Assembly (NCBI RefSeq): GCF_036321535.1
Contig: NC_087445.1
Location: 67,642,001 to 67,706,000, forward strand
Reading direction: 5' to 3'
DNA from: Camelus dromedarius
Lineage: Eukaryota
Length of the DNA stretch: 64,000 nucleotides
Shown: positions 11,971-61,413 of the stretch, one piece after another
How positions within the stretch are numbered: the stretch's first letter is position 1
Layout of the letters: every line of letters begins with the position of its first letter
Made by a program: the position numbers and the translations under genes
Notes under the pieces: generated by a model
Seen by the model: the letters and a program-made list of their open reading frames with translations, nothing else
What the model was told of the DNA's origin: nothing
Database searches by the model: none

Positions 11971-12915
11971 TCAAGAGGGTGCTGCCTGGGGTTTCCTCCT
12001 GCCCTTCAGCTTCCTCAGGCCCTGCTTCAGGTCTTTGTTTCTCAGGCTGTAGATGAAAGGGTTGAGCATGGAGGACAGAACTGTGTAGACAATCGTTGCC
12101 ATGTGGTCCCTGACGGTGTAGGTGGACACGGGCTGTAAATAGACATAGAAGATGCTTCCATAAAAGAGTGTTACCACAGTGAGGTGAGAACCGCAAGTGG
12201 AGAAGGCTTTGCGTTTCCCAGCAGCTGAAGGAATGTTGAAAACAGTGATGAGGATTCGTGTGTAAGAGAAAGCAATGAATAGAAAGGGGGTCACCAAAAT
12301 AACAGATCCTTCAATCATTATCACAATTTCATTGACAAATGTGGAGGAGCAGGACAATTTCATCAGAGGGCTGAGGTCGCAGAGAAAGTGGTGGATAACA
12401 TTAGAGTCACAGAAGTTGAGCTGATTCAGCAGAAGTGTGTGTAGGAGTGAGTGGAGGTGAGGCAATGAGCAGGAGAAGGCCACCAGGAGGACACAGCGGT
12501 GGTGGCTCATGATGGTGACATAGTGGAAGGGGTCACAGATGGCCACATAGCGGTCAAAGGCCATGACTGCTAGAAGGCAGCTGTCAGTGTTGCCCAAAGC
12601 ATATATAAAATACATCTGGGTCAGACACCCAGCATAGGCGATGGTCTTCCCCGACAAGAAGTTGACCAGCATCCTGGGAACAATGGTCGTTGAGAAGCAA
12701 ATGTCAGTGAATGATAGGAAACTCAAGAAGAAATACATGGGGGTCTTGAGCTGGGGGTCAGAGCGGATGGCCAGGATGATGAGCAGGTTCCCTATTATTG
12801 TGATGAGGTACATGGTGAGGAAGAGGATAAAGAGTGGCATCTGGTCCTCAGGCCGGGAGGAGAGTCCCAGGAGGATGAATTCAGAGACACTGCTGGTTTG
12901 GTTGACTCTTTCCAT
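11971..12915 (-). CDS. OR1L8: Olfactory receptor OR1L8-like, copy 1 (314 aa)
   Basis: MERVNQTSSVSEFILLGLSSRPEDQ; motifs [40 protein letters not shown]; intact frame. The ORF-track extension to 13029 starts at GTG and is not counted. Symbol marks closest family member, not proven orthology. Confidence 0.93.
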   Translation of the reverse strand: MERVNQTSSVSEFILLGLSSRPEDQMPLFILFLTMYLITIIGNLLIILAIRSDPQLKTPMYFFLSFLSFTDICFSTTIVPRMLVNFLSGKTIAYAGCLTQMYFIYALGNTDSCLLAVMAFDRYVAICDPFHYVTIMSHHRCVLLVAFSCSLPHLHSLLHTLLLNQLNFCDSNVIHHFLCDLSPLMKLSCSSTFVNEIVIMIEGSVILVTPFLFIAFSYTRILITVFNIPSAAGKRKAFSTCGSHLTVVTLFYGSIFYVYLQPVSTYTVRDHMATIVYTVLSSMLNPFIYSLRNKDLKQGLRKLKGRRKPQAAPS

Positions 12916-13947
12916 TGACTTGGGTCTAGTTATATACAAGAAGCTTTTTTTTAAATTTATTTTACATGTCCCAATTCCATCACCTAATCCTGAGAAGCCA
13001 GCAGGTCTTTGTTTCCTCTGTTTCGTCACAATGAGCAGTTGTGCAGGGACCGCTTGTCAACCTCATGGTCTTTGTTGTACTCTTCCCTTCCCAAATCTGT
13101 GGGCTTCATATGGGCTTTATGTTGAAAGCTGGAGGAACAGAAGAAGAATTTTCCTTTAGAAATCATCAGACATGGCCCTCTCTGATTCAAGTTCATTAGT
13201 TTCTATTCTGTGAAAAGCACTCCCTCTACCTCTCTTTTCTCCCACAAGAACATAGTCATATAACCCACGAATGTTTGCCTCTTGGTAGCTCATGTTGTAT
13301 TGGGAAGGTAAGTCATCAACAAAGAAAATATGCAATATAATATCAGGTAGGGATAAATTTTATTAACAAAATAGAGCAGTATATGGGGATGGAGGGGACT
13401 GGGATGTATGGATGGAAGTATTTTAGATAGCGAAGTCACATGACACTCATTCCTTATCAAAGCAAATTCAGTTGTATAACACTAGAGTTCATCTTTGCAT
13501 GTCTTGGAAACAAATAAGGGTTTGCCACTACAACCAACAGGGCAAATCTAGGAGGAATGCTGAATCCAGTTCAACCGTGTTATTTTCCTCCTCTGGGCAC
13601 AGAATGAGAGAGGGTCCTCCTCCTCCACTCATGGGCTGCTGTCATCATCAGTGTGTGCAAGTCTCCCCTGTTTTGTAGTTGTTTTTCCTTTCTTTAACCC
13701 CCTGTCCTAAATCACATTTGTACAGGATGGGCATCCTTTGCTGGCTATTCAATTCCTGTTTTAAAAACTCCTCTTTCGTATATTTATCCACAAATATCTA
13801 TGAGACACATGTTTATATATGTGATTTTTCAGTCATATCCAATTTCCCAGAAATAGACATAAAAAAACCTTCATTTCTTGCTGCTACAAAAACCTCTGTA
13901 ATGAGAGGTCTTTTATCAGCAAAGTGCTTTCAAAAAGTACTTTAGAC

Positions 13948-20409: not shown

Positions 20410-21354
20410 TCAAGAGGGTGCTGCCTGGGGTTTCCTCCTGCCCATCAGCTTCCTCAGGCCCTGCTTCAGGTCTTTGTTTCTCAGGCTGTAGATGAAAGGG
20501 TTGAGCATGGAGGACAGAACTGTGTAGACAATCGTTGCCATGTGGTCCCTGACGGTGTAGGTGGACACGGGCTGTAAATAGACATAGAAGATGCTTCCAT
20601 AAAAGAGTGTTACCACAGTGAGGTGAGAACCGCAAGTGGAGAAGGCTTTGCGTTTCCCAGCAGCTGAAGGAATGTTGAAAACAGTGATGAGGATTCGCGT
20701 ATAAGAGAAAGCAATGAATAGAAAGGGGGTCACCACAAAAACAGATCCTTCAATCATTATCACAATTTCATTGACAAATGTGGAGGAGCAGGACAATTTC
20801 ATCAGAGGGCTGAGGTCGCAGAGAAAGTGGTGGATAACATTAGAGTCACAGAAGTTGAGCTGATTCAGCAGAAGTGTGTGTAGGAGTGAGTGGAGGTGAG
20901 GCAATGAGCAGGACAAGGCCACCAGGAGGGCACAGCGGTGGTGGCTCATGATGGTGACATAGTGGAAGGGGTCACAGATGGCCACATAGCGGTCAAAGGC
21001 CATGACTGCTAGAAGGCAGCTGTCAGTGTTGCCCAAAGCATATACAAAATACATCTGGGTCAGACACCCAGCATAGGAGATGGTCTTCCCTGACACGAAG
21101 TTCACCAGCATTCTGGGGACGATGGTCGTTGTGAAGCAAATATCAGTGAAAGACAAGAAACTCAAGAAGAAATACATGGGGGTCTGGAGGTGGGGATCAG
21201 AGCGGATGGCCAGGATGATGAGCAGGTTCCCTATTATTGTGATGAGGTACATGGTGAGGAAGAGGATAAAGAGTGGCATCTGGTCCTCAGGCCGGGAGGA
21301 GAGTCCCAGGAGGATGAATTCAGAGACACTGCTGGTTTGGTTGACTCTTTCCAT
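20410..21354 (-). CDS. OR1L8: Olfactory receptor OR1L8-like, copy 2 (314 aa)
   Basis: Intact frame from ATG at 21354; same length as copy 1 and about 23 nt different; all OR motifs present. Confidence 0.93.
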   Translation of the reverse strand: MERVNQTSSVSEFILLGLSSRPEDQMPLFILFLTMYLITIIGNLLIILAIRSDPHLQTPMYFFLSFLSFTDICFTTTIVPRMLVNFVSGKTISYAGCLTQMYFVYALGNTDSCLLAVMAFDRYVAICDPFHYVTIMSHHRCALLVALSCSLPHLHSLLHTLLLNQLNFCDSNVIHHFLCDLSPLMKLSCSSTFVNEIVIMIEGSVFVVTPFLFIAFSYTRILITVFNIPSAAGKRKAFSTCGSHLTVVTLFYGSIFYVYLQPVSTYTVRDHMATIVYTVLSSMLNPFIYSLRNKDLKQGLRKLMGRRKPQAAPS

Positions 21355-22235
21355 TGACTTGGGTCTAGTTATATACAAGAAGCTTTTTTTTTTAAATTTA
21401 TTTTACATGTTCCAATTCCATCACCTAATCCTGAGAAGCCAGCAGGTCTTTGTTTCCTCTATTTTGTCACAATGAGCAGTTGTGCAGGGACCGCTTGTCA
21501 ACCTCATGGTCCTTGATTTCATCTTCCATTCCCAGGTCCACTGGCATTGTAAGGGCCTTGTATTGAAAGCTAGAGAGACAGAAGAAGAGTTTTCCTTTAG
21601 AAATCATCAGAGATGGCCCTCTCTGATTGAAGTTCATTAGCTCTTATTCTGAGAAAGGCACTGTCTCCATGCTGGGAACATAGCAATAAAACAGAGAAAT
21701 CTTTTGCTTTGGGTAGCTCATGTTCTAGTTTGGAAGACAGATCAGCAACCAAGAAATATGCAATATAGTATCAGGTAGGGATAAATTTTGTTAACAAAAT
21801 AGAGCAGTATAAGGATGGAGATGGCTGAGGAGTGGAGGGTGGAGGTATTTTAGATAGCGAAGTTACAGGACACTCATTCCTTATCAAAGCAATTTCAGTT
21901 GTATAACACTAGAGTTCATCTTTGCATGTCTTGGAAACAAATAAGGGTTTGTCCCAATAACCAATAGGGCAAATCTAGGAGAAATGCTGAATCCAGTTCA
22001 ACAGTGTTATTTTCCTCCTCTGGGCACAGAATGAGAGAGGGTCCTCCTCCTCCACTCATGGGCTGCTGTCATCATCAGTGTGTGCAAGTCTCCCCTGTTT
22101 TGTGGTTGTTTTTCCTTTCTTTAACCCCCTGTCCTAAATCACATTTGTACAGGATGGGCATCCTTTGCTGGCTATTCAATTCCTGTTTTAAAAACTCCTC
22201 TTTCATACATTTATCCAAAAATATCTATGAGATAC

Positions 22236-32218: not shown

Positions 32219-33151
32219 CTAGGACATCCTCCTGCCCATCAGCTTCCCCAGGCTCCTCTTTATGTCTTTGTTTCTCAGGCTGTAGATGAAAGGGTTGAGC
32301 ATAGAGGACAGAACTGTGTAGACAATTGTTGCCACGCGGTCCCTAACAGTGTAGCTGGACAAGGGCTTTAAATAGACATAAAAGACGCTTCCGTAAAACA
32401 GGATCACCACAGTAAAATGGGAACCACAAGTGGAGAAGGCTTTGTGTTTCCCAGCAGCTGAGGGAATCTTGAGAACCGTAATGAGGATTCGTATATACGA
32501 AAAAACAATGCATAGAAATGGAGTCACCAAAACAACCAGTCCTTCTGTCTTTATTGTGATATTGTTGACAAATGTGGAGGAGCAGGATGATTTCAGCAGA
32601 GGGTTGATGTCACAGAGAAAGTGGTGGATGACACTGGAGTTGCAGAAAGTGAGCTGATTCAGCAGAAGTGTGTGTAGGAGTGAGTGGAGGTGAGGCAATG
32701 AGCAGGAGACGGCCACCAGGAGGACACAGCGGTGGTGGCTCATGATGGTGACATGGTGGAAGGGGTCACAGATGGCCACATAGCGGTCAAAGGCCATGAC
32801 TGCTAGAAGGCAGCTGTCAGTGTTGCCCAAAACATATATAAAATACATCTGAGTCAGACACCTAGCATAGGAGATGGTCTTCTTCTCCGACAGGAAGTTG
32901 ACCAGCATCCTGGGGACAATGGTTGTTACGAAGCAAATGTCAGTGAACGACAGGAAACTCAAGAAGAAATACATGGGGGTCTGGAGGTGGGGGTCAGAGC
33001 AGATGGCCAGGATGATGAGCAGATTCCCTGTTATGGTGACCAGGTACATGGTGAGGAAGAGGATAAAGAGTGGCTTCTGGTCCTCAGGCAGGGAGGAGAG
33101 TCCCAGGAGGATGAACTCAGAGACGCTGCTAGTCTGGTTGATTTCTTCCAT
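32219..33151 (-). CDS. OR1L8: Olfactory receptor OR1L8-like, copy 3 (310 aa)
   Basis: MEEINQTSSVSEFILLGLSSLPEDQKPLF...NFLSEKKTISY...KLMGRRMS*; retains the SEKKT loop; acceptor-like ctctatcttag 8 nt upstream of the ATG. Confidence 0.93.
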   Translation of the reverse strand: MEEINQTSSVSEFILLGLSSLPEDQKPLFILFLTMYLVTITGNLLIILAICSDPHLQTPMYFFLSFLSFTDICFVTTIVPRMLVNFLSEKKTISYARCLTQMYFIYVLGNTDSCLLAVMAFDRYVAICDPFHHVTIMSHHRCVLLVAVSCSLPHLHSLLHTLLLNQLTFCNSSVIHHFLCDINPLLKSSCSSTFVNNITIKTEGLVVLVTPFLCIVFSYIRILITVLKIPSAAGKHKAFSTCGSHFTVVILFYGSVFYVYLKPLSSYTVRDRVATIVYTVLSSMLNPFIYSLRNKDIKRSLGKLMGRRMS

Positions 33152-35699
33152 GGAGTCAGCTAAGATAGAGGTGATCCTACAATTTAACACACATCTTTCT
33201 CTCATAATTGTAACCACAAACAAACCAGTAAGTCTATGTTTCTTCCTATCTTTCCTGTCCACCCACAGGGTCATGATTAGCTACCACACAGGCGACTTGT
33301 CAGCTTTGTGGTCCTTGATGCTGCCCTTCCTTCCCGACTCTAAGATTTCACAAGCTTCTTGTATTGATAGCGTGATCTCAAGAGGAAGAATTTTCTTTGA
33401 GGAACAGAATCGAACCTTCCTGATTCAGTTTAACATTAAACTTTAGAAACAATTTTTTATTGAGCACCTAGTCTGTGAAAAATATTCTTCTGGGAGTGGG
33501 GACACAGTTGTGAATATACCATAGAAAGACCTGTTTGTGCATCTTACCTTCTAATGGAGGATCGATTGATCGATCTATCTGTCATCTATCTATCATCAGA
33601 TAGTTTGACATTTTATAAAGAGAAATAAAGTCACATAAGGGGATATTGACTTAGAGAAGTAAGGAGGGATTTATTTATTTTAGATAAGGTAGTTTTATTG
33701 TTCTCTCTATATCAAAATGAATTTTCAATGATGGATTCCTAATATATCTCTAAACCTCCTTGCCAAAAAGAGGAGCTCAATAAAATAATAAACAGGGAAA
33801 TCAAAGGAATAATGAACCAAGGCCAACGAAGTGTTACTGTTGTGGTTATTTTATCTTCGGAGGCATTTATTTCAAAGCTTACACTTCTTAGTGAACTTCA
33901 AATTATACTATCAATCCATACAAATCTTAAGTTTTAAATTTACTTTTGACTGATTTTTCCTCTAATTGCTTAAACCTAATCATGTTCCCACATCTTGGGC
34001 ACCCAACCATTAAGCAAGCATACGTCCTTCAGTGCCATCATCCATTTGTTTATTTACCGATGTATATATCCTTGAAATATATATATATTATTGCCTTCTT
34101 TATGTGAGCTTTTCTTCCATTTACCTCAGTAATTCTTTGGCATATATCTCATTCTTGTTTTTTCTCTTTATATACATTTTTTTTGATATCGATCTCTGTT
34201 CTGGTTCTTTACTTTTGACTTTTTCCATCATATTCCAGCAGCACATGACTTAATATTCATGTCCCTAGTTGTCCTCTAAGCCTTTGCTACCATGAGCAAC
34301 GTAGATTCAAATATCCTCATGGCCACAAAGTGTTCTACATCATTCATCCAGACAATGAGACTGGATAGGCATTTTGAAAGAGCAATTCAAGGAATCATCA
34401 TTCATTTATTCACACAACAATTAAATGCTTACTTTCCAGCTGGTTAACATCAAGCAAGTTATTAAATATTTTTAAACTTCAGTTTCCTCATCTGTAAATA
34501 GGGTATACTAATATTTACCATTTATGAGTTTTATGAGTTTTTCGTGATATCATGTGTTTAAAGCACTTAGAATGGTTCAGGGACAGAGAAAACATTTGAT
34601 GCCACTGTCTTCTCCCTGTCATTATTATTGCCAATGAATTTCTCTCCAACCAGGTTTTTGGACATGTTCTCAAAAGTAACGAATCTAAATATTGAAATGA
34701 CCCTAGTTCTCACACTCTAATTTTCTAATGGTCAAATTCATCTTATTATGAATCTACAATGCTTTTTTAGGTGGTGTATGGTTCATACTTTGAATAATCT
34801 GAGAGTGAATCAGTAATTAAGCACTTACCACATGCAAGTAGAATTTTGTTTCATTCTTACAACAACCTTATGAGGCATAAGCTATTATTATTGCTTTTTT
34901 TCTGATGATGAAACAGATATAGATTTAAAATAATTTGCTAAAGTCACACATCAAGTAAACAGCAGAAACGAGATTCAAATACCACACTAATTCTAAATCT
35001 CAAGATTTAACTATGATGTATTTTCTCATATTTTTGTAAAGTTATAAAAGTATCTATGAAACAATCATGTATAAGATCTATTTTTTCCCAATTTGACCAT
35101 TTTCTATTTTAACACAGACACACACACACACACACACACATTTTTTCCCTTAAATGTTTTTCATTCCTCATTAAGAACAGACTTCTGTTGTTACAAAAGG
35201 AAACCTATTTTCTATGCTGAGCAGATTGTAGAATTTGAGAATTTTAATATCCATGATTCATTGGCAACAATAAGGGAGAATTTGGACTTTGATGTCTGGG
35301 ACATTATGTTTTTATGGGGTTGAGGGTTTAGTAGGAAGTGCACTGAACTTGGAAGAAGAAAGTGGAAACTTGTGCCTGAAATTCATTACTTGCTCACTGA
35401 GTGATCTCAGGGGCCCTGAAGAGCTAAAGAAGTATCAGGTATAAGTGTGGTTTGTAAAATATACTACAGAAAGTGAGAATCTGAGGGGATAATTCTAAAA
35501 GTCCTCTTATTGAGGATCTGCTTCCCCAACAACAATGGGATACCTTGGCCCAGGGATCAAATAGGGTGGTCGCAAAATACAAAGTTAGACTTAAATGGTA
35601 GGCTGAACTCTGTGATATACTTTATCCGTGTGATTTGTGGAACCGAATCAAATTCAAAAACTGAATTTTGAGTCTGAAGTAAGTACCTGATTGAGGCGG

Positions 35700-41796: not shown

Positions 41797-41945
41797 AGTG
41801 CCAAGCGCTAAGATGGCAGAGTAGAAGGACACATAGCTCCTGCCCTCCCATGAATACACCCAAAATTACATCTACAGACCCATCAATTTACACAGAACAC
41901 CTACTGAACTTTGGCAGAATATCTCTTACCTGGAAATGGAGGAGG
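41797..41945 (+). mobile_element. Isolated L1 5'-end fragment inside a MIR
   Basis: aagatggcagagtagaaggacac...cagaacacctactgaactttggcagaa interrupts the MIR core ccattttatagaggag|gaactgagg. Confidence 0.6.
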
Positions 41946-42409
41946 AACTGAGGTACATTGCAAAAGTGCCCAAGGCCACCCAGGTAGTAAATTGTTGAGG
42001 TTGGAATCCAATTTAAGCCTCTTGGCTAAGAAGCCCCAGCTCCTGGCTGGCACTCTGCAATGTACTCATAGAACGGAAACTCCAAGAGTCAGGGGGGTGG
42101 ATATTTTATTTTTTGTTCTATTCCTAGTGCCAAGAATAGCATCTGGAAGACCATTGAATAAGTGAAGACATTTACACTGGTCTCCTTTGAAGGAAAATCT
42201 TGTTTGCCATTGGAATTCTGATGCATTCAGTGACCAGAGTCGGGCAGACAGAAAATTCCAACAGCAAATGTGCAGTTTGTCTGAGTTTTGACACAGTCTC
42301 CAGGAAAGAAAAGCACATGGCTGTAATGAACACATGGTGATGATAACCACTATGTCTCAGTCTCTGATGTTTTCTACTCCCCGTATCCCCAGCAGAGATT
42401 AAGAAGAGC

Positions 42410-43351
42410 ATGAGGAGGGAGAACCGGAGCAGCGTGTCCGAGTTCCTCCTCCTGGGGCTCCCCATCCGGCCAGAGCAGCGGGGCGTGGTCTTCGCCCTGT
42501 TCCTGGGCGTGTACCTGACCACGGTGCTGGGGAACCTGCTCATCATCCTGCTCATCAGGCTGGACTCTCGCCTCCACACCCCCATGTACTTCTTCCTCAG
42601 CCACTTGGCCTTCTCTGACATCTCCCTCTCATCTATCACTGTCCCAAAGATGCTGGTGAACATGCTGACTCAGCAAAAATCCATCCCCTATGTGGGGTGC
42701 ATTTCCCAGATATATTTTTTCATACTTTTTGCTTGTCTTGACAATTTCCTTCTTGCAGTGATGGCCTATGACAGGTATGTGGCCATCTGTCAGCCACTTC
42801 TCTACACCACCGTCATGAGGGAGGGACTGTGTATCTTACTTGTGGCTGGATCTTGGTTCTTCTCGTGTGTCCATGCCCTGTTGCACACCCTCCTGCTGTC
42901 CTGCCTGTCTTTTTGTGCTGACAATACCATCCCCCACTTCTTCTGCGATCTCACTGCCCTCTTGAAGTTGACCTGCTCAGACACCTCCCTCAACGAGCTG
43001 GTTCTCTTCATCGAGGGTGGAATGATTGCCTTTCTTCCAATGAGTGCTATTTTGGGCTCTTATATCTGCATTGGGGCCACTATCCTGAGGGTCCCCTCCA
43101 TCAAGAGAATCTGCAAAGCCTTGTCCACCTGTGGCTCCCACCTCTTTGTGGTGTTTTTGTACTATGGGACTCTTGCAATGAGTTACTTCTTTCCTTCATC
43201 AAACAACTCCAAGGTCAAAGACATAATTGCTTCAGTTATGTACACCGTGGTGACACCCATGTTAAACCCCTTTACCTATAGCCTGAGGAACAGAGACATG
43301 AAACTGGCTCTGGGGATAATTTACAGGAATAGGATTTCTTTTGCCAAATAA
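42410..43351 (+). CDS. OR1J4: Olfactory receptor OR1J-like A (313 aa; OR1J4-like)
   Basis: [23 protein letters not shown]; [44 protein letters not shown]; intact. Symbol marks subfamily similarity only. Confidence 0.92.
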
Positions 43352-43511
43352 CAGTTGCCAGTTACGCTTTTAATTTTCCTAGTGATGCTTCTAGAGACAT
43401 CGTCTTGAAAAATTGTGTGATTGTGGCAGACTGCAAAAATGGCCACAATATTTGCAGCTCTTCCTTGTATGTTCCTGTCATATAGGCAATATATGTGAAA
43501 ATCATACCCCA

Positions 43512-49414: not shown

Positions 49415-50353
49415 ATGAGGAGGGGGAACCAGAGCAGCGTGTCCGAGTTTCTCCTCCTGGGGCTCCCCATCCGGCCACAGCAGCGGTGCGTGGTCTTCGC
49501 CCTGTTCCTGGGCGTGTACCTGACCACGGTGCTGGGGAACCTGCTCATCATCCTGCTCATCAGGCTGGACTCTCGCCTCCACACCCCCATGTACTTCTTC
49601 CTCAGCCACTTGGCCTTCACCGACGTCTCTTTTTCATCTGTCACCATCCCTAAGATGCTGATGGACATGCACACTGAGTACAAATTCATCCCCTATGCAG
49701 GGTGCATTTCACAGATATATTTTTTCATACTTTTTGGTTGTTTTGATAATTTCCTTCTTGCAGTGATGGCCTATGACAGGTATGTGGCCATCTGTCAGCC
49801 ACTTCACTACACCACCATCATGAGGGAGGAGCTGTGCATCTCCTTAGTAGCTGGGTCCTGGGTCTTCTGTTGTATCCATGCCCTGTTGCACACCCTCCTC
49901 TTGGTCCAACTGTCCTTCTGTGCTGACAATACCATCCCCCATTTCTTCTGTGACCTCACTGTGCTCCTCAAGTTGAGCTGCTCGGACATCTCCCTCAATG
50001 AGCTGGTCATCTTCACTGAGGGAGGAACGCTGTTCATCCTGCCTTTGAGTAGTATCTTAGCCTCATACATTCATATAGGGACTACCATCCTGAGGGTCCC
50101 CTCCACTAAGAGACTCTTTAAAGCTTTTTCCACCTGTGGCTCCCATCTCTTTGTGGTGTCTTTATACTATGGGACACTTGCTGGTGTTTACTTTTTCTCC
50201 TCATCATGGGACTCCAATAACAAAGACATGATTGCTTCAGTCATGTATACAGTAGTTACTCCCATGCTGAACCCTTTCATCTATAGCCTCAGGAACAGAG
50301 ATATAAAACAGGCCCTAGAAATAGTTGTCAATAGGGCTAACTTGTTGAAGTGA
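49415..50353 (+). CDS. OR1J4: Olfactory receptor OR1J-like B (312 aa)
   Basis: Intact; [46 protein letters not shown]. Symbol marks subfamily similarity only. Confidence 0.92.
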
Positions 50354-53518: not shown

Positions 53519-54930
53519 CCCAGAAATGAACCCACAAACTTTTGGTCAACTCATCTTCGACAAAGGAGGCAAGAATATACATTGGAATAAAGACAGTCTC
53601 TTCAGCAAATGGTGCTGGGAAAACTGGACAGCAGCATGTAAAACAATGAAGCTAGAACACTCCCTTACACCATATACAAAAATCAACTTAAAATGGATTA
53701 AAGACTTAAACATAAGACAAGATACAATAAACCTCCTAGAGGAAAACATAGGCAAAACATTATCTGACATACATCTCAAAAATTTTCTCCTAGAAGAAAT
53801 AAAAGCAAGAATAAACAAATGGGACCTAATGAAACTTACAAGCTTCTGCACAGCAAAGGAAACCAGAAATAAAACAAGAAGAAAACCTACGGAATGGGAG
53901 AAAATTTTTGCAAGTGAAACCGACAAAGGCTTGATCTCCAGAATATATAAGCAGCTCATACGACTCAATAAGAAAAAAATAAACAACCCAATCCAAAAAT
54001 GGGCAGAAGNNNNNNNNNNNNNNNNNNNNNNNNNNNNNNNNNNNNNNNNNNNNNNNNNNNNNNNNNNNNNNNNNNNNNNNNNNNNNNNNNNNNNNNNNNN
54101 NNNNNNNNNNNNNNNNNNNNNNNNNNNNNNNNNNNNNNNNNNNNNNNNNNNNNNNNNNNNNNNNNNNNNNNNNNNNNNNNNNNNNNNNNNNNNNNNNNNN
54201 NNNNNNNNNNNNNNNNNNNNNNNNNNNNNNNNNNNNNNNNNNNNNNNNNNNNNNNNNNNNNNNNNNNNNNNNNNNNNNNNNNNNNNCTTACCATATGACC
54301 CAGGAATCCCACTCCTGGGCTTGTATCCAGAAGGAAATCTACTTCAGGANNNNNNNNNNNNNNNNNNNNNNNNNNNNNNNNNNNNNNNNNNNNNNNNNNN
54401 NNNNNNNNNNNNNNNNNNNNNNNNNNNNNNNNNNNNNNNNNNNNNNNNNNNNNNNNNNNNNNNNNNNNNNNNNNNNNNNNNNNNNNNNNNNNNNNNNNNN
54501 NNNNNNNNNNNNNNNNNNNNNNNNNNNNNNNNNNNNNNCATTCTAAGTAAGCCAGAAAGAGAAAGAAAAATACCATATGAGATCACTCATATGTGGAATC
54601 TAAAAAACAAAAACAAAAACAAACAAACAAACAAAAACAAAGCGTAAATAAAGGACAGAAATAGACTCACAGACAGAGAATACAGACTTGTGGTTACCAG
54701 AGGGGTGGAGGGTGGGAAGGGATAGACTGGGATTTCAAAATTGTAGAATAGACTACACTGTATAGCACAGGGAAATATACACAAAATGTTATGATAACTC
54801 ACAGAGAAAAAAATGTGACAAAGAGTGTGTATATGTCCATGAATAACTGAAAAATTGTGCTGAACACTGGAATTTGACACAACATTGTAAAATGATTATA
54901 AATCAATAAAAAATGTTAAAAAAAAAAAAA
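53519..54930 (+). mobile_element. Young 5'-truncated camelid L1 (~1.4 kb) with perfect 16-bp TSD
   Basis: ORF2 C-terminus ([33 protein letters not shown]), 3'UTR, poly(A); TSD aagaacccgggctctg at 53503-53518 and 54929-54944 at a TT/AA site. A 5-nt deletion (ctaagt[gaagt]aagcc) frameshifts the ORF2 end. Confidence 0.95.
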
Positions 54931-60474: not shown

Positions 60475-61413
60475 ATGAGGAGGGAGAACCAGAGCAGCGT
60501 GTCCGAGTTCCTCCTCCTGGGGCTCCCCATCCGGCCAGAGCAGCGGGGCGTGGTCTTCGCCCTGTCCCTGGGCGTGTACCTGACCACGGTGCTGGGGAAC
60601 CTGCTCATCATCCTGCTCATCAGGCTGGACTCTCGCCTCCACACCCCCATGTACTTCCTCCTCAGCCACTTGGCCCTCACCGACGTCTCCTTTTCATCTG
60701 TCATCGTCCCAAAGATGCTCATGAACATGCAGACTCAGCACCTATCCATCTCCTATCCAGGGTGTATCTCACAGATATATTTTTACCTATTTTTCGGTTG
60801 TGTTGATAGTCTCCTCCTTGCAGTGATGGCTTATGACAGGTACGTGGCCATCTGTCACGCCCTCCACTACACCACCATCATGAGGGAGGGGCTGTGTGTG
60901 CTGCTGGTGGCAGGCTCCTGGATTCTCTCCTGTGGCAGTGCCCTCCTGCACACCCTCCTGCTGGCCCAGGTGTCCTTCTGTGCTGACAACATCATTCCTC
61001 ACTTTTTCTGTAGCCTCCCCATCCTAATCAAGCTGTCCTGCTCAGACACCTCTCTCAATGAGCTGGTCATATTCACCACGGGGGCTGCGGTTGTCATGTT
61101 TCCATTCAGTGGCATCCTGGTCTCTTATGGCTGCATTGTCGTCTCCACCCTGAGGGTCCCCACTGTTAAGAGGATCTTCAAAGCCTTGTCCACCTGTGGC
61201 TCCCACCTCTCTGTAGTGTGTCTATTCTATGGAACAGTTGTGGCACTGTACTTTTCCTCATCAGGCGACTCCAATGACAAAGACATGATTGCCTCGCTGA
61301 TGTATACAGTGGTCACCCCCCTGCTGAACCCCTTCATCTATAGCCTAAGGAACAGAGACATGAAACTGGCTCTGGGGATTCTTTTCAGAAACAACAAGCT
61401 TTTTGCCAGGTGA
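60475..61413 (+). CDS. OR1J4: Olfactory receptor OR1J-like C (312 aa)
   Basis: Intact frame; [35 protein letters not shown]; atypical HALHY and HFFCS. Symbol marks subfamily similarity only. Confidence 0.9.

Follow-up and report, generated by a model that had tools for sequence, protein, structure and literature searches.

Concerted evolution confined to a GC-rich 5' cassette in the OR1J olfactory receptor genes of the dromedary

The window, by which we mean the whole 64,000-nucleotide stretch of dromedary (Camelus dromedarius) DNA that was analysed, carries on its + strand three intact olfactory receptor (OR) genes, called A, B and C here (Table 1). All three matched the Pfam family 7tm_4 (PF13853) at 161-180 bits (curated cut-off 27), and the nearest named proteins in a protein search were those of subfamily 1J (OR1J4-like, OR1J2-like and OR1J21-like; the names are automatic annotation); a Camelus bactrianus protein with 98% identity likewise bears the automatically assigned name OR1J4-like. 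By these similarities, A, B and C are classified as class II ORs of family 1, subfamily J (7tm_4). Of the words sampled from the gene-A stretch (41900-43400), 22% were present in an RNA-seq run labelled 'reproductive system', which hints at transcription outside the nose. Three further intact ORs, of another subfamily, lie on the - strand of the window; their GC content at third codon positions (GC3) is 0.75-0.79 in the 5' part and 0.63-0.64 in the rest, and the first two of them in Table 1 are very similar throughout, with 5 differences in the first 201 nt. A long ORF at 53526-54647, which is broken by runs of N and has LINE-like residues, is masked sequence.

Table 1. OR genes of the window, the two parts of the OR1J coding sequence, and the OR1J genes with the cassette outside the window (positions prefixed G000:C10).
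Feature	Position	Strand	Basis or remark
Gene A	42410-43351	+	Intact ORF
Gene B	49415-50353	+	Intact ORF
Gene C	60475-61413	+	Intact ORF
5' edge of paralogy, presumed splice acceptor of the coding exon	42395-42409	+	Flank alignment, BLAST
Gene A 5' cassette, codons 1-67: N-terminus, TM1, ICL1, start of TM2	42410-42610	+	Composition and identity to paralogs
Gene A diverged 3' part: TM2 to C-terminus and stop codon	42611-43351	+	Paralog divergence, 3' tree
Gene B 5' cassette	49415-49615	+	5 differences to A, 6 to C; GC3 64/67
Gene B diverged 3' part	49616-50353	+	3' tree orthogroup
Gene C 5' cassette	60475-60675	+	3 differences to A; GC3 65/67
Gene C diverged 3' part	60676-61413	+	Sister to bear gene in 3' tree
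OR of another subfamily, intact	11971-13029	-	N-terminus MERVNQTSSVSEF
OR of another subfamily, intact	20410-21378	-	N-terminus MERVNQTSSVSEF
OR of another subfamily, intact	32219-33274	-	N-terminus MERVNQTSSVSEF
L005	G000:C10 67710109	+	Intact OR1J with cassette, outside window
L002	G000:C10 67717398	-	Intact OR1J with cassette, outside window
L004	G000:C10 67728164	+	Intact OR1J with cassette, outside window
L008	G000:C10 67733354	+	Intact OR1J with cassette, outside window
L009	G000:C10 67764993	-	Intact OR1J with cassette, outside window
L010	G000:C10 67783325	+	Intact OR1J with cassette, outside window
L006	G000:C10 67820967	-	Intact OR1J with cassette, outside window

The best database matches were NCBI models of 475-500 aa, named OR1J4-like, from dozens of mammals. 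In the nine such models that we inspected, residues 1-166 of an OR1J gene, up to a point just past HTLLL, precede the next OR1J gene in full length. In the dromedary, two models correspond exactly to C(1-166)+L005 and L005(1-166)+L004, gene C being joined to the gene at G000:C10:67710109. No GT donor is evident at the codon 166 junction in most camel genes. The joined models represent either real inter-gene splicing or an annotation artefact spread by homology.

Within nt 1-201 (codons 1-67), a script counted 5 differences between A and B, 3 between A and C and 6 between B and C; beyond nt 201 the three genes differ at 155-182 positions, i.e., 21-25% of the remaining ~740 nt. The cassette of gene A contains 64.2% GC and 10 CpG, and third positions are G or C in 65/67 of its codons, falling to 31/56 in the following 56 codons. 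For the cassette genes as a set, GC3 is 0.93-0.97 in the cassette compared to 0.58-0.67 further along the same genes. A pooled two-rate change-point analysis over paralog pairs placed the break after column 201 (rates: 0.034 and 0.272), with the change points of individual pairs spanning 201-315 (median 209). Script and change-point analysis reproduced exactly the difference counts, the GC, CpG and GC3 figures and the codon-67 boundary given by an earlier reading of this DNA made from the sequence alone (hereafter, the sequence-only reading). As detected by BLAST, paralog similarity starts just 9-21 nt upstream of the ATG and ends near the stop codon; the flanks of A, B and C are unalignable, with alignment at background level upstream of about -15.

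Chance was rejected as the origin of the cassette GC3 (probability of at least 65/67, given 0.68: 3e-9). We also rejected the cassette as a general OR feature: in other intact ORs of the same genome (n = 39), GC3 averaged 0.66-0.68 in the equivalent 5' segment (maximum 0.84) and 0.60-0.63 over the rest of the gene, a 5' gradient of only +0.06, although one further OR1-type family, on contig C24, reaches 0.90 (below). Only two third positions in the cassette of gene A are A or T, namely those of codon 21 (P21 CCA; 42470-42472) and codon 53 (S53 TCT; 42566-42568). Both appear to be kept as A/T across the aligned mammals, and four-fold sites showed zero W<>W differences in 17 pair comparisons (W, A or T; S, G or C). 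Such conservation is not expected from GC bias alone; for codon 21, a CpG-decay equilibrium that returns CCG to CCA is a possible reason.

A genome search with the 201 nt returned ten copies at 97-100% identity, all inside 140 kb (G000:C10 67,684,410-67,821,167), seven on the + and three on the - strand, and the next genomic match was at most 81% identical. The sequence-only reading had assigned the cassette to three OR1J genes, which is correct for A, B and C but not as a total, since seven of the ten genes that carry it lie beyond the window. All ten are single-exon ORFs of 312-319 aa without stops, with OR motifs seen in their translations. Their mean pairwise distance is 0.035 in the cassette vs 0.26 elsewhere in the gene, and the 3' part of gene A differs by 21-30% from those of the nine remaining paralogs. 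Two pairs are recent duplicates along their whole length: B and L006 (about 1% divergence), and L008 and L009 (about 3% divergence; about 97% identity in the CDS). L006 (G000:C10:67819467-67822667) is an inverted near-copy of gene B, 130 kb away, with 98.3% identity across all 3 kb compared, flanks included. It represents a recent segmental duplication in inverted orientation or, alternatively, a haplotype that the assembly contains twice.

On a different contig, two ORs of another OR1-type family (L011, G000:C24:9497751-9500942, and L012, 9489830-9493021) are 96.8% identical over exactly the coding region and unalignable in their flanks, a pattern that suggests conversion of the whole CDS. 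Their 5' GC3 is 0.90, and they differ at 2/201 positions in the 5' part vs 22/699 in the 3' part.

The protein search found OR1J-named proteins in many orders. For comparison with other mammals, we used DNA from bear, musk deer, elephant, squirrel, warthog, sloth, a vespertilionid bat, C. ferus and C. bactrianus, the OR1J cluster of each species being sampled in part. The main alignment held 18 further intact OR1J genes from other genomes, 2 more from C. bactrianus were compared separately, and trees were built for nt 1-201 (5') and for nt 202 to the end (3'). The 3' tree recovered orthology with strong support: gene A grouped with a musk deer gene (99/97), its nearest relative in this part (13% apart), within a group holding elephant and sloth; B grouped with musk deer, warthog, bear, squirrel and bat genes (100/100); and C was sister to a bear gene (100/99), at 11.8% divergence vs 23.8% to the nearest camel paralog. 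The camel genes required six separate placements in this tree, and their monophyly was rejected at a cost of 469 log-likelihood units (AU p = 5e-77). Because the 3' parts group by ortholog, the divergence of the OR1J paralogs precedes that of the placental orders. In contrast, 11/12 camel cassettes formed one clade in the 5' tree (99/95), as did two squirrel cassettes (97/90) though these fall in different 3' orthogroups, and the orthologous pairings were disfavoured (AU p = 0.004, 0.011 and 0.085). The check proposed in the sequence-only reading, that is, separate trees for the two parts, thus returned grouping by species for the 5' part and by ortholog for the 3' part.

Distances and synonymous divergence followed the trees. 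Camel paralogs lie 0.035 apart in the 5' part, closer than to their orthologs (0.05-0.10), whereas in the 3' part they lie 0.21-0.33 apart and their orthologs 0.12-0.13. Among A, B and C, dS is 0.00-0.02 (5') vs 0.62-0.73 (3'), and over all camel paralog pairs it averages 0.05 vs 0.92. Between species, dS is 0.04-0.38 in the cassette vs 0.32-0.56 in the 3' part, usually 2-5 times below the 3' dS of the same genes, and dN between orthologs is alike in both parts (5': 0.05-0.10; 3': 0.07-0.14). Strong protein constraint on codons 35-67 (dN: 0-0.06) adds to the similarity. The mean paralog dS in the cassette is thus lower than its between-species dS although the paralogs predate the species, indicating concerted evolution limited to one segment. 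Two lineages or more thus show concerted evolution restricted to this segment, most probably driven by interlocus gene conversion. The cassettes are strongly homogenised in camels; homogenisation is evident in squirrel, and not evident in bear or musk deer, whose paralogs show no clustering by species in the 5' part (distance: 0.08-0.09 within species vs a between-species mean of 0.093) and whose cassette GC3 is still about 0.9. Bat and sloth give no judgement, because their copies are recent duplicates throughout. Tree conflict and dS agree in bearing out the claim that the paralogs diverge except in the 5' tract, which conversion keeps alike. That claim had been set against the prospect of a 5' tree following orthology with low cassette dS across species; the dS is indeed low, owing to GC bias, but grouping in the 5' tree is not by ortholog.

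Camelus species differ from each other by 1.0-2.5% in the tract and by 0.4-1.5% in the 3' part, ruling out a low mutation rate as the cause of the low cassette dS. One C. ferus gene (gene 1) differs from its dromedary ortholog L004 at 5/201 positions in the 5' part vs 3/735 in the 3' part (p = 0.014). Four of these five 5' differences fall at nt 17-31, and at all four both states occur among other paralogs, so that the cluster looks like a short conversion patch gained after the Camelus species split. The remaining Camelus ortholog pairs (3/4) show no 5' excess; further differences between Camelus orthologs that match states of other paralogs are found at nt 64, 71, 158 and 184.

Unequal crossing-over inside the cassette, with chimeric genes and gain or loss of copies, could also have homogenised the tract. 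The genes are tandem, the cluster has undergone the recent duplications B/L006 and L008/L009, and exchange in a common 200-nt tract would yield exactly 5'/3' chimeras. However, crossover with the three inverted genes would invert or break the cluster, and every 3' orthogroup has been kept beside its orthologs in other mammals, which speaks against repeated loss and replacement. The apparent recent patch covers between 15 and roughly 100 nt, and the recent duplicates reach well past the cassette. Since the identity of B and L006 covers the whole 3 kb compared, their breakpoints lie outside the cassette, and the suggestion in the sequence-only reading that the cassette acts as a site of crossover and copy-number variation found no support. 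We consider crossing-over improbable as the source of the homogenisation. The exchange was probably non-reciprocal conversion, given the inverted genes, the persistence of all orthogroups and the small size of the recent patch; short non-crossover tracts, of a width like that of the cassette, are known in mammals.

The reach of the cassette extends well beyond camels. In all other orders sampled it is 90-95% identical to that of camel gene A, and in the nine placental lineages sampled GC3 of codons 1-67 is 0.85-0.97, with a drop at codon ~68-70 in each. As far as these sequences tell, the cassette is a pan-placental feature of OR1J and no camel peculiarity, because the GC3 step and the boundary recur in all nine lineages. 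Three substitutions are camel-specific, i.e., nt 71 A>G (Q24R; 9/10 copies), nt 79 T>G (F27V; 10/10 copies) and nt 100 A>G (M34V; 10/10 copies); all are W>S and nonsynonymous, and they are absent from 16/16 sequences of other orders. Residues that had been proposed as species-specific therefore stand in part: QRGVV and GVY (R24, V27 and V34) are camel-only among the mammals sampled, but DSRL also occurs in bear, musk deer, elephant, squirrel, sloth and bat and, by this distribution, is taken to be ancestral.

The substitution spectrum of the cassette is GC-biased. At four-fold sites pooled over 17 ortholog pairs, which share branches and so are not independent, S<>W differences amount to 5.3% in the 5' part vs 20.1% in the 3' part, and G<>C differences per S-S site to 4.6% vs 6.9% (ratio 0.67; Fisher p = 0.14, not significant). 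The synonymous deficit is essentially confined to S<>W, as predicted under GC-biased gene conversion (gBGC), since gBGC ignores G<>C; the nominally lower S<>S figure leaves room for some extra constraint on the cassette. Among derived variants in the ten camel cassettes, S>W changes are held to 3 copies or fewer in 12/12 cases, while 4/10 W>S changes reach at least 8 copies (Fisher p = 0.029; 0.049 without ambiguous sites), a test of direction with small numbers (201 sites, 3-4 fixed changes). The GC bias that the sequence-only reading had attributed to conversion is upheld on both counts, by an S<>W deficit with near-normal G<>C and by the wide spread of W>S variants only.

The same figures bear on an explanation without conversion, in which the nucleotides of the cassette themselves have a function inside the coding exon, as a protein-binding site, an RNA structure, or a signal for translation or choice, and are under purifying selection that includes synonymous sites. 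Such a functional element would fit the reduced cassette dS between species, the conservation of the GC3 step and boundary across the placentals sampled, and the apparent conservation of the A/T third positions of P21 and S53. Constraint nevertheless leaves two things unexplained: ancient paralogs of one species resemble each other more than they resemble their orthologs, and lineage-specific changes are common to ten camel copies or to both squirrel copies. Moreover, the synonymous G<>C rate is indistinguishable from that of the 3' part, S<>W alone being missing, which disfavours a constrained DNA or RNA element as the cause of low dS; tract divergence between Camelus species equals or exceeds that of the rest of the gene; and an Rfam scan of 42000-43400 gave no match, only one chance-level hit far below threshold. 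We judge this explanation to be slightly less credible still than crossing-over. Repeats of 200 nt with 97-100% identity can in principle defeat short reads. Nothing else spoke for an assembler that collapsed or copied the near-identical 5' ends, and such an artefact is very unlikely, to the point of being negligible, because the assemblies of three Camelus species and of eight other mammals, made independently, agree: the cassette occurs with gene-specific variants in C. ferus, C. bactrianus and the eight others, each copy has private variants, and 14 DNA runs from 6 studies contain 94-96% of the words sampled from the gene-A stretch.

We are therefore fairly confident that recurrent GC-biased interlocus gene conversion, acting over short tracts among tandem and inverted OR1J paralogs, targets these 201 nt. 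The first ~200 coding bases would be copied recurrently between ancient paralogs, so that the copies in one species evolve jointly, and heteroduplex repair would prefer G/C. New G/C>A/T mutations would be held to one or two copies and then erased, while A/T>G/C changes could reach every copy, even protein-altering ones (Q24R, F27V and M34V in camels). On this account, the process drove third positions over time to 85-97% G/C and removed most between-species synonymous S<>W divergence, with G<>C changes still building up at a nearly normal pace. What we infer here is the molecular mechanism, why the boundary lies where it does, and the timing in the germline. Upstream, the tract would reach as far as the homology does, to the edge of the exon. 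Downstream, divergence of ~26% may stop heteroduplex formation, and selection for distinct ligand-binding helices may also purge converted alleles. The high identity of the cassettes would in turn keep conversion going. A bolder proposal, which we regard as doubtful, is that the OR1J coding exon holds a fixed PRDM9-independent initiation site for ectopic conversion, active for about the whole placental radiation. The cassette would then be a self-propagating GC-biased driver that keeps its own identity and converting ability and imposes TM1 amino-acid changes on all paralogs simultaneously, whatever those changes do to the receptors.

Paralogous conversion is hard to measure in extended arrays (PMC10463633). 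The OR1J locus provides a natural experiment in which converting and non-converting modules adjoin in one exon, replicated in ten paralogs and many mammalian orders, and in which the influence of ectopic GC-biased conversion on GC3, CpG content, dS and dN/dS is measurable against an internal control. There are also practical consequences: the dN/dS of about 0.5-1 in codons 1-67 would be mistaken for relaxed or positive selection, OR1J trees and orthology calls that include the first 200 nt are biased to species clustering, and short reads within the tract lack a unique assignment.

The mechanism and its occurrence in OR clusters are already known, and the OR1J 5' cassette, of which we found no specific description in the searchable literature, adds a case that is unusual in its cleanness and its long duration. 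Partial conversion among OR paralogs of one cluster was reportedly seen by Sharon et al. in 1999 in the primate chromosome 17 OR cluster and by Nagawa et al. in 2002 in the mouse MOR28 cluster, and human interlocus conversion signals are said to include ORs. As in those two clusters, tandem ORs swap short coding segments and parts of the genes look younger than the genes themselves. Unlike there, the OR1J exchange is confined to one fixed 201-nt segment, spans ten genes on both strands, and has left a footprint that is common to all placental orders sampled and tied to near-saturated GC3.

GC-biased gene conversion is reported to have been described by Galtier in 2003 for mammalian histone genes and by Kudla et al. 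in 2004 for Hsp70, and rDNA is a further multigene family in which it occurs. These families resemble OR1J in that converting paralogs have raised GC3, W>S changes are favoured and nonsynonymous changes may fix. However, histone, Hsp70 and rDNA families homogenise whole genes, whereas OR1J has a sharp intragenic step (GC3 from 0.95 to 0.6 at codon ~68) that parts the converting from the diversifying module in one exon and so supplies the internal control. Mosaic divergence under interlocus conversion plus selection is treated for TLR1/TLR6 (PMC2077338) and in modelling of tandem paralogues (bioRxiv 10.1101/2025.10.29.685298). As in OR1J, conversion there reportedly keeps some segments alike while functionally distinct segments escape; compared to mosaics of the type portrayed there, OR1J is a family of ten ORs and no pair, and it bears an explicit signature of GC bias.
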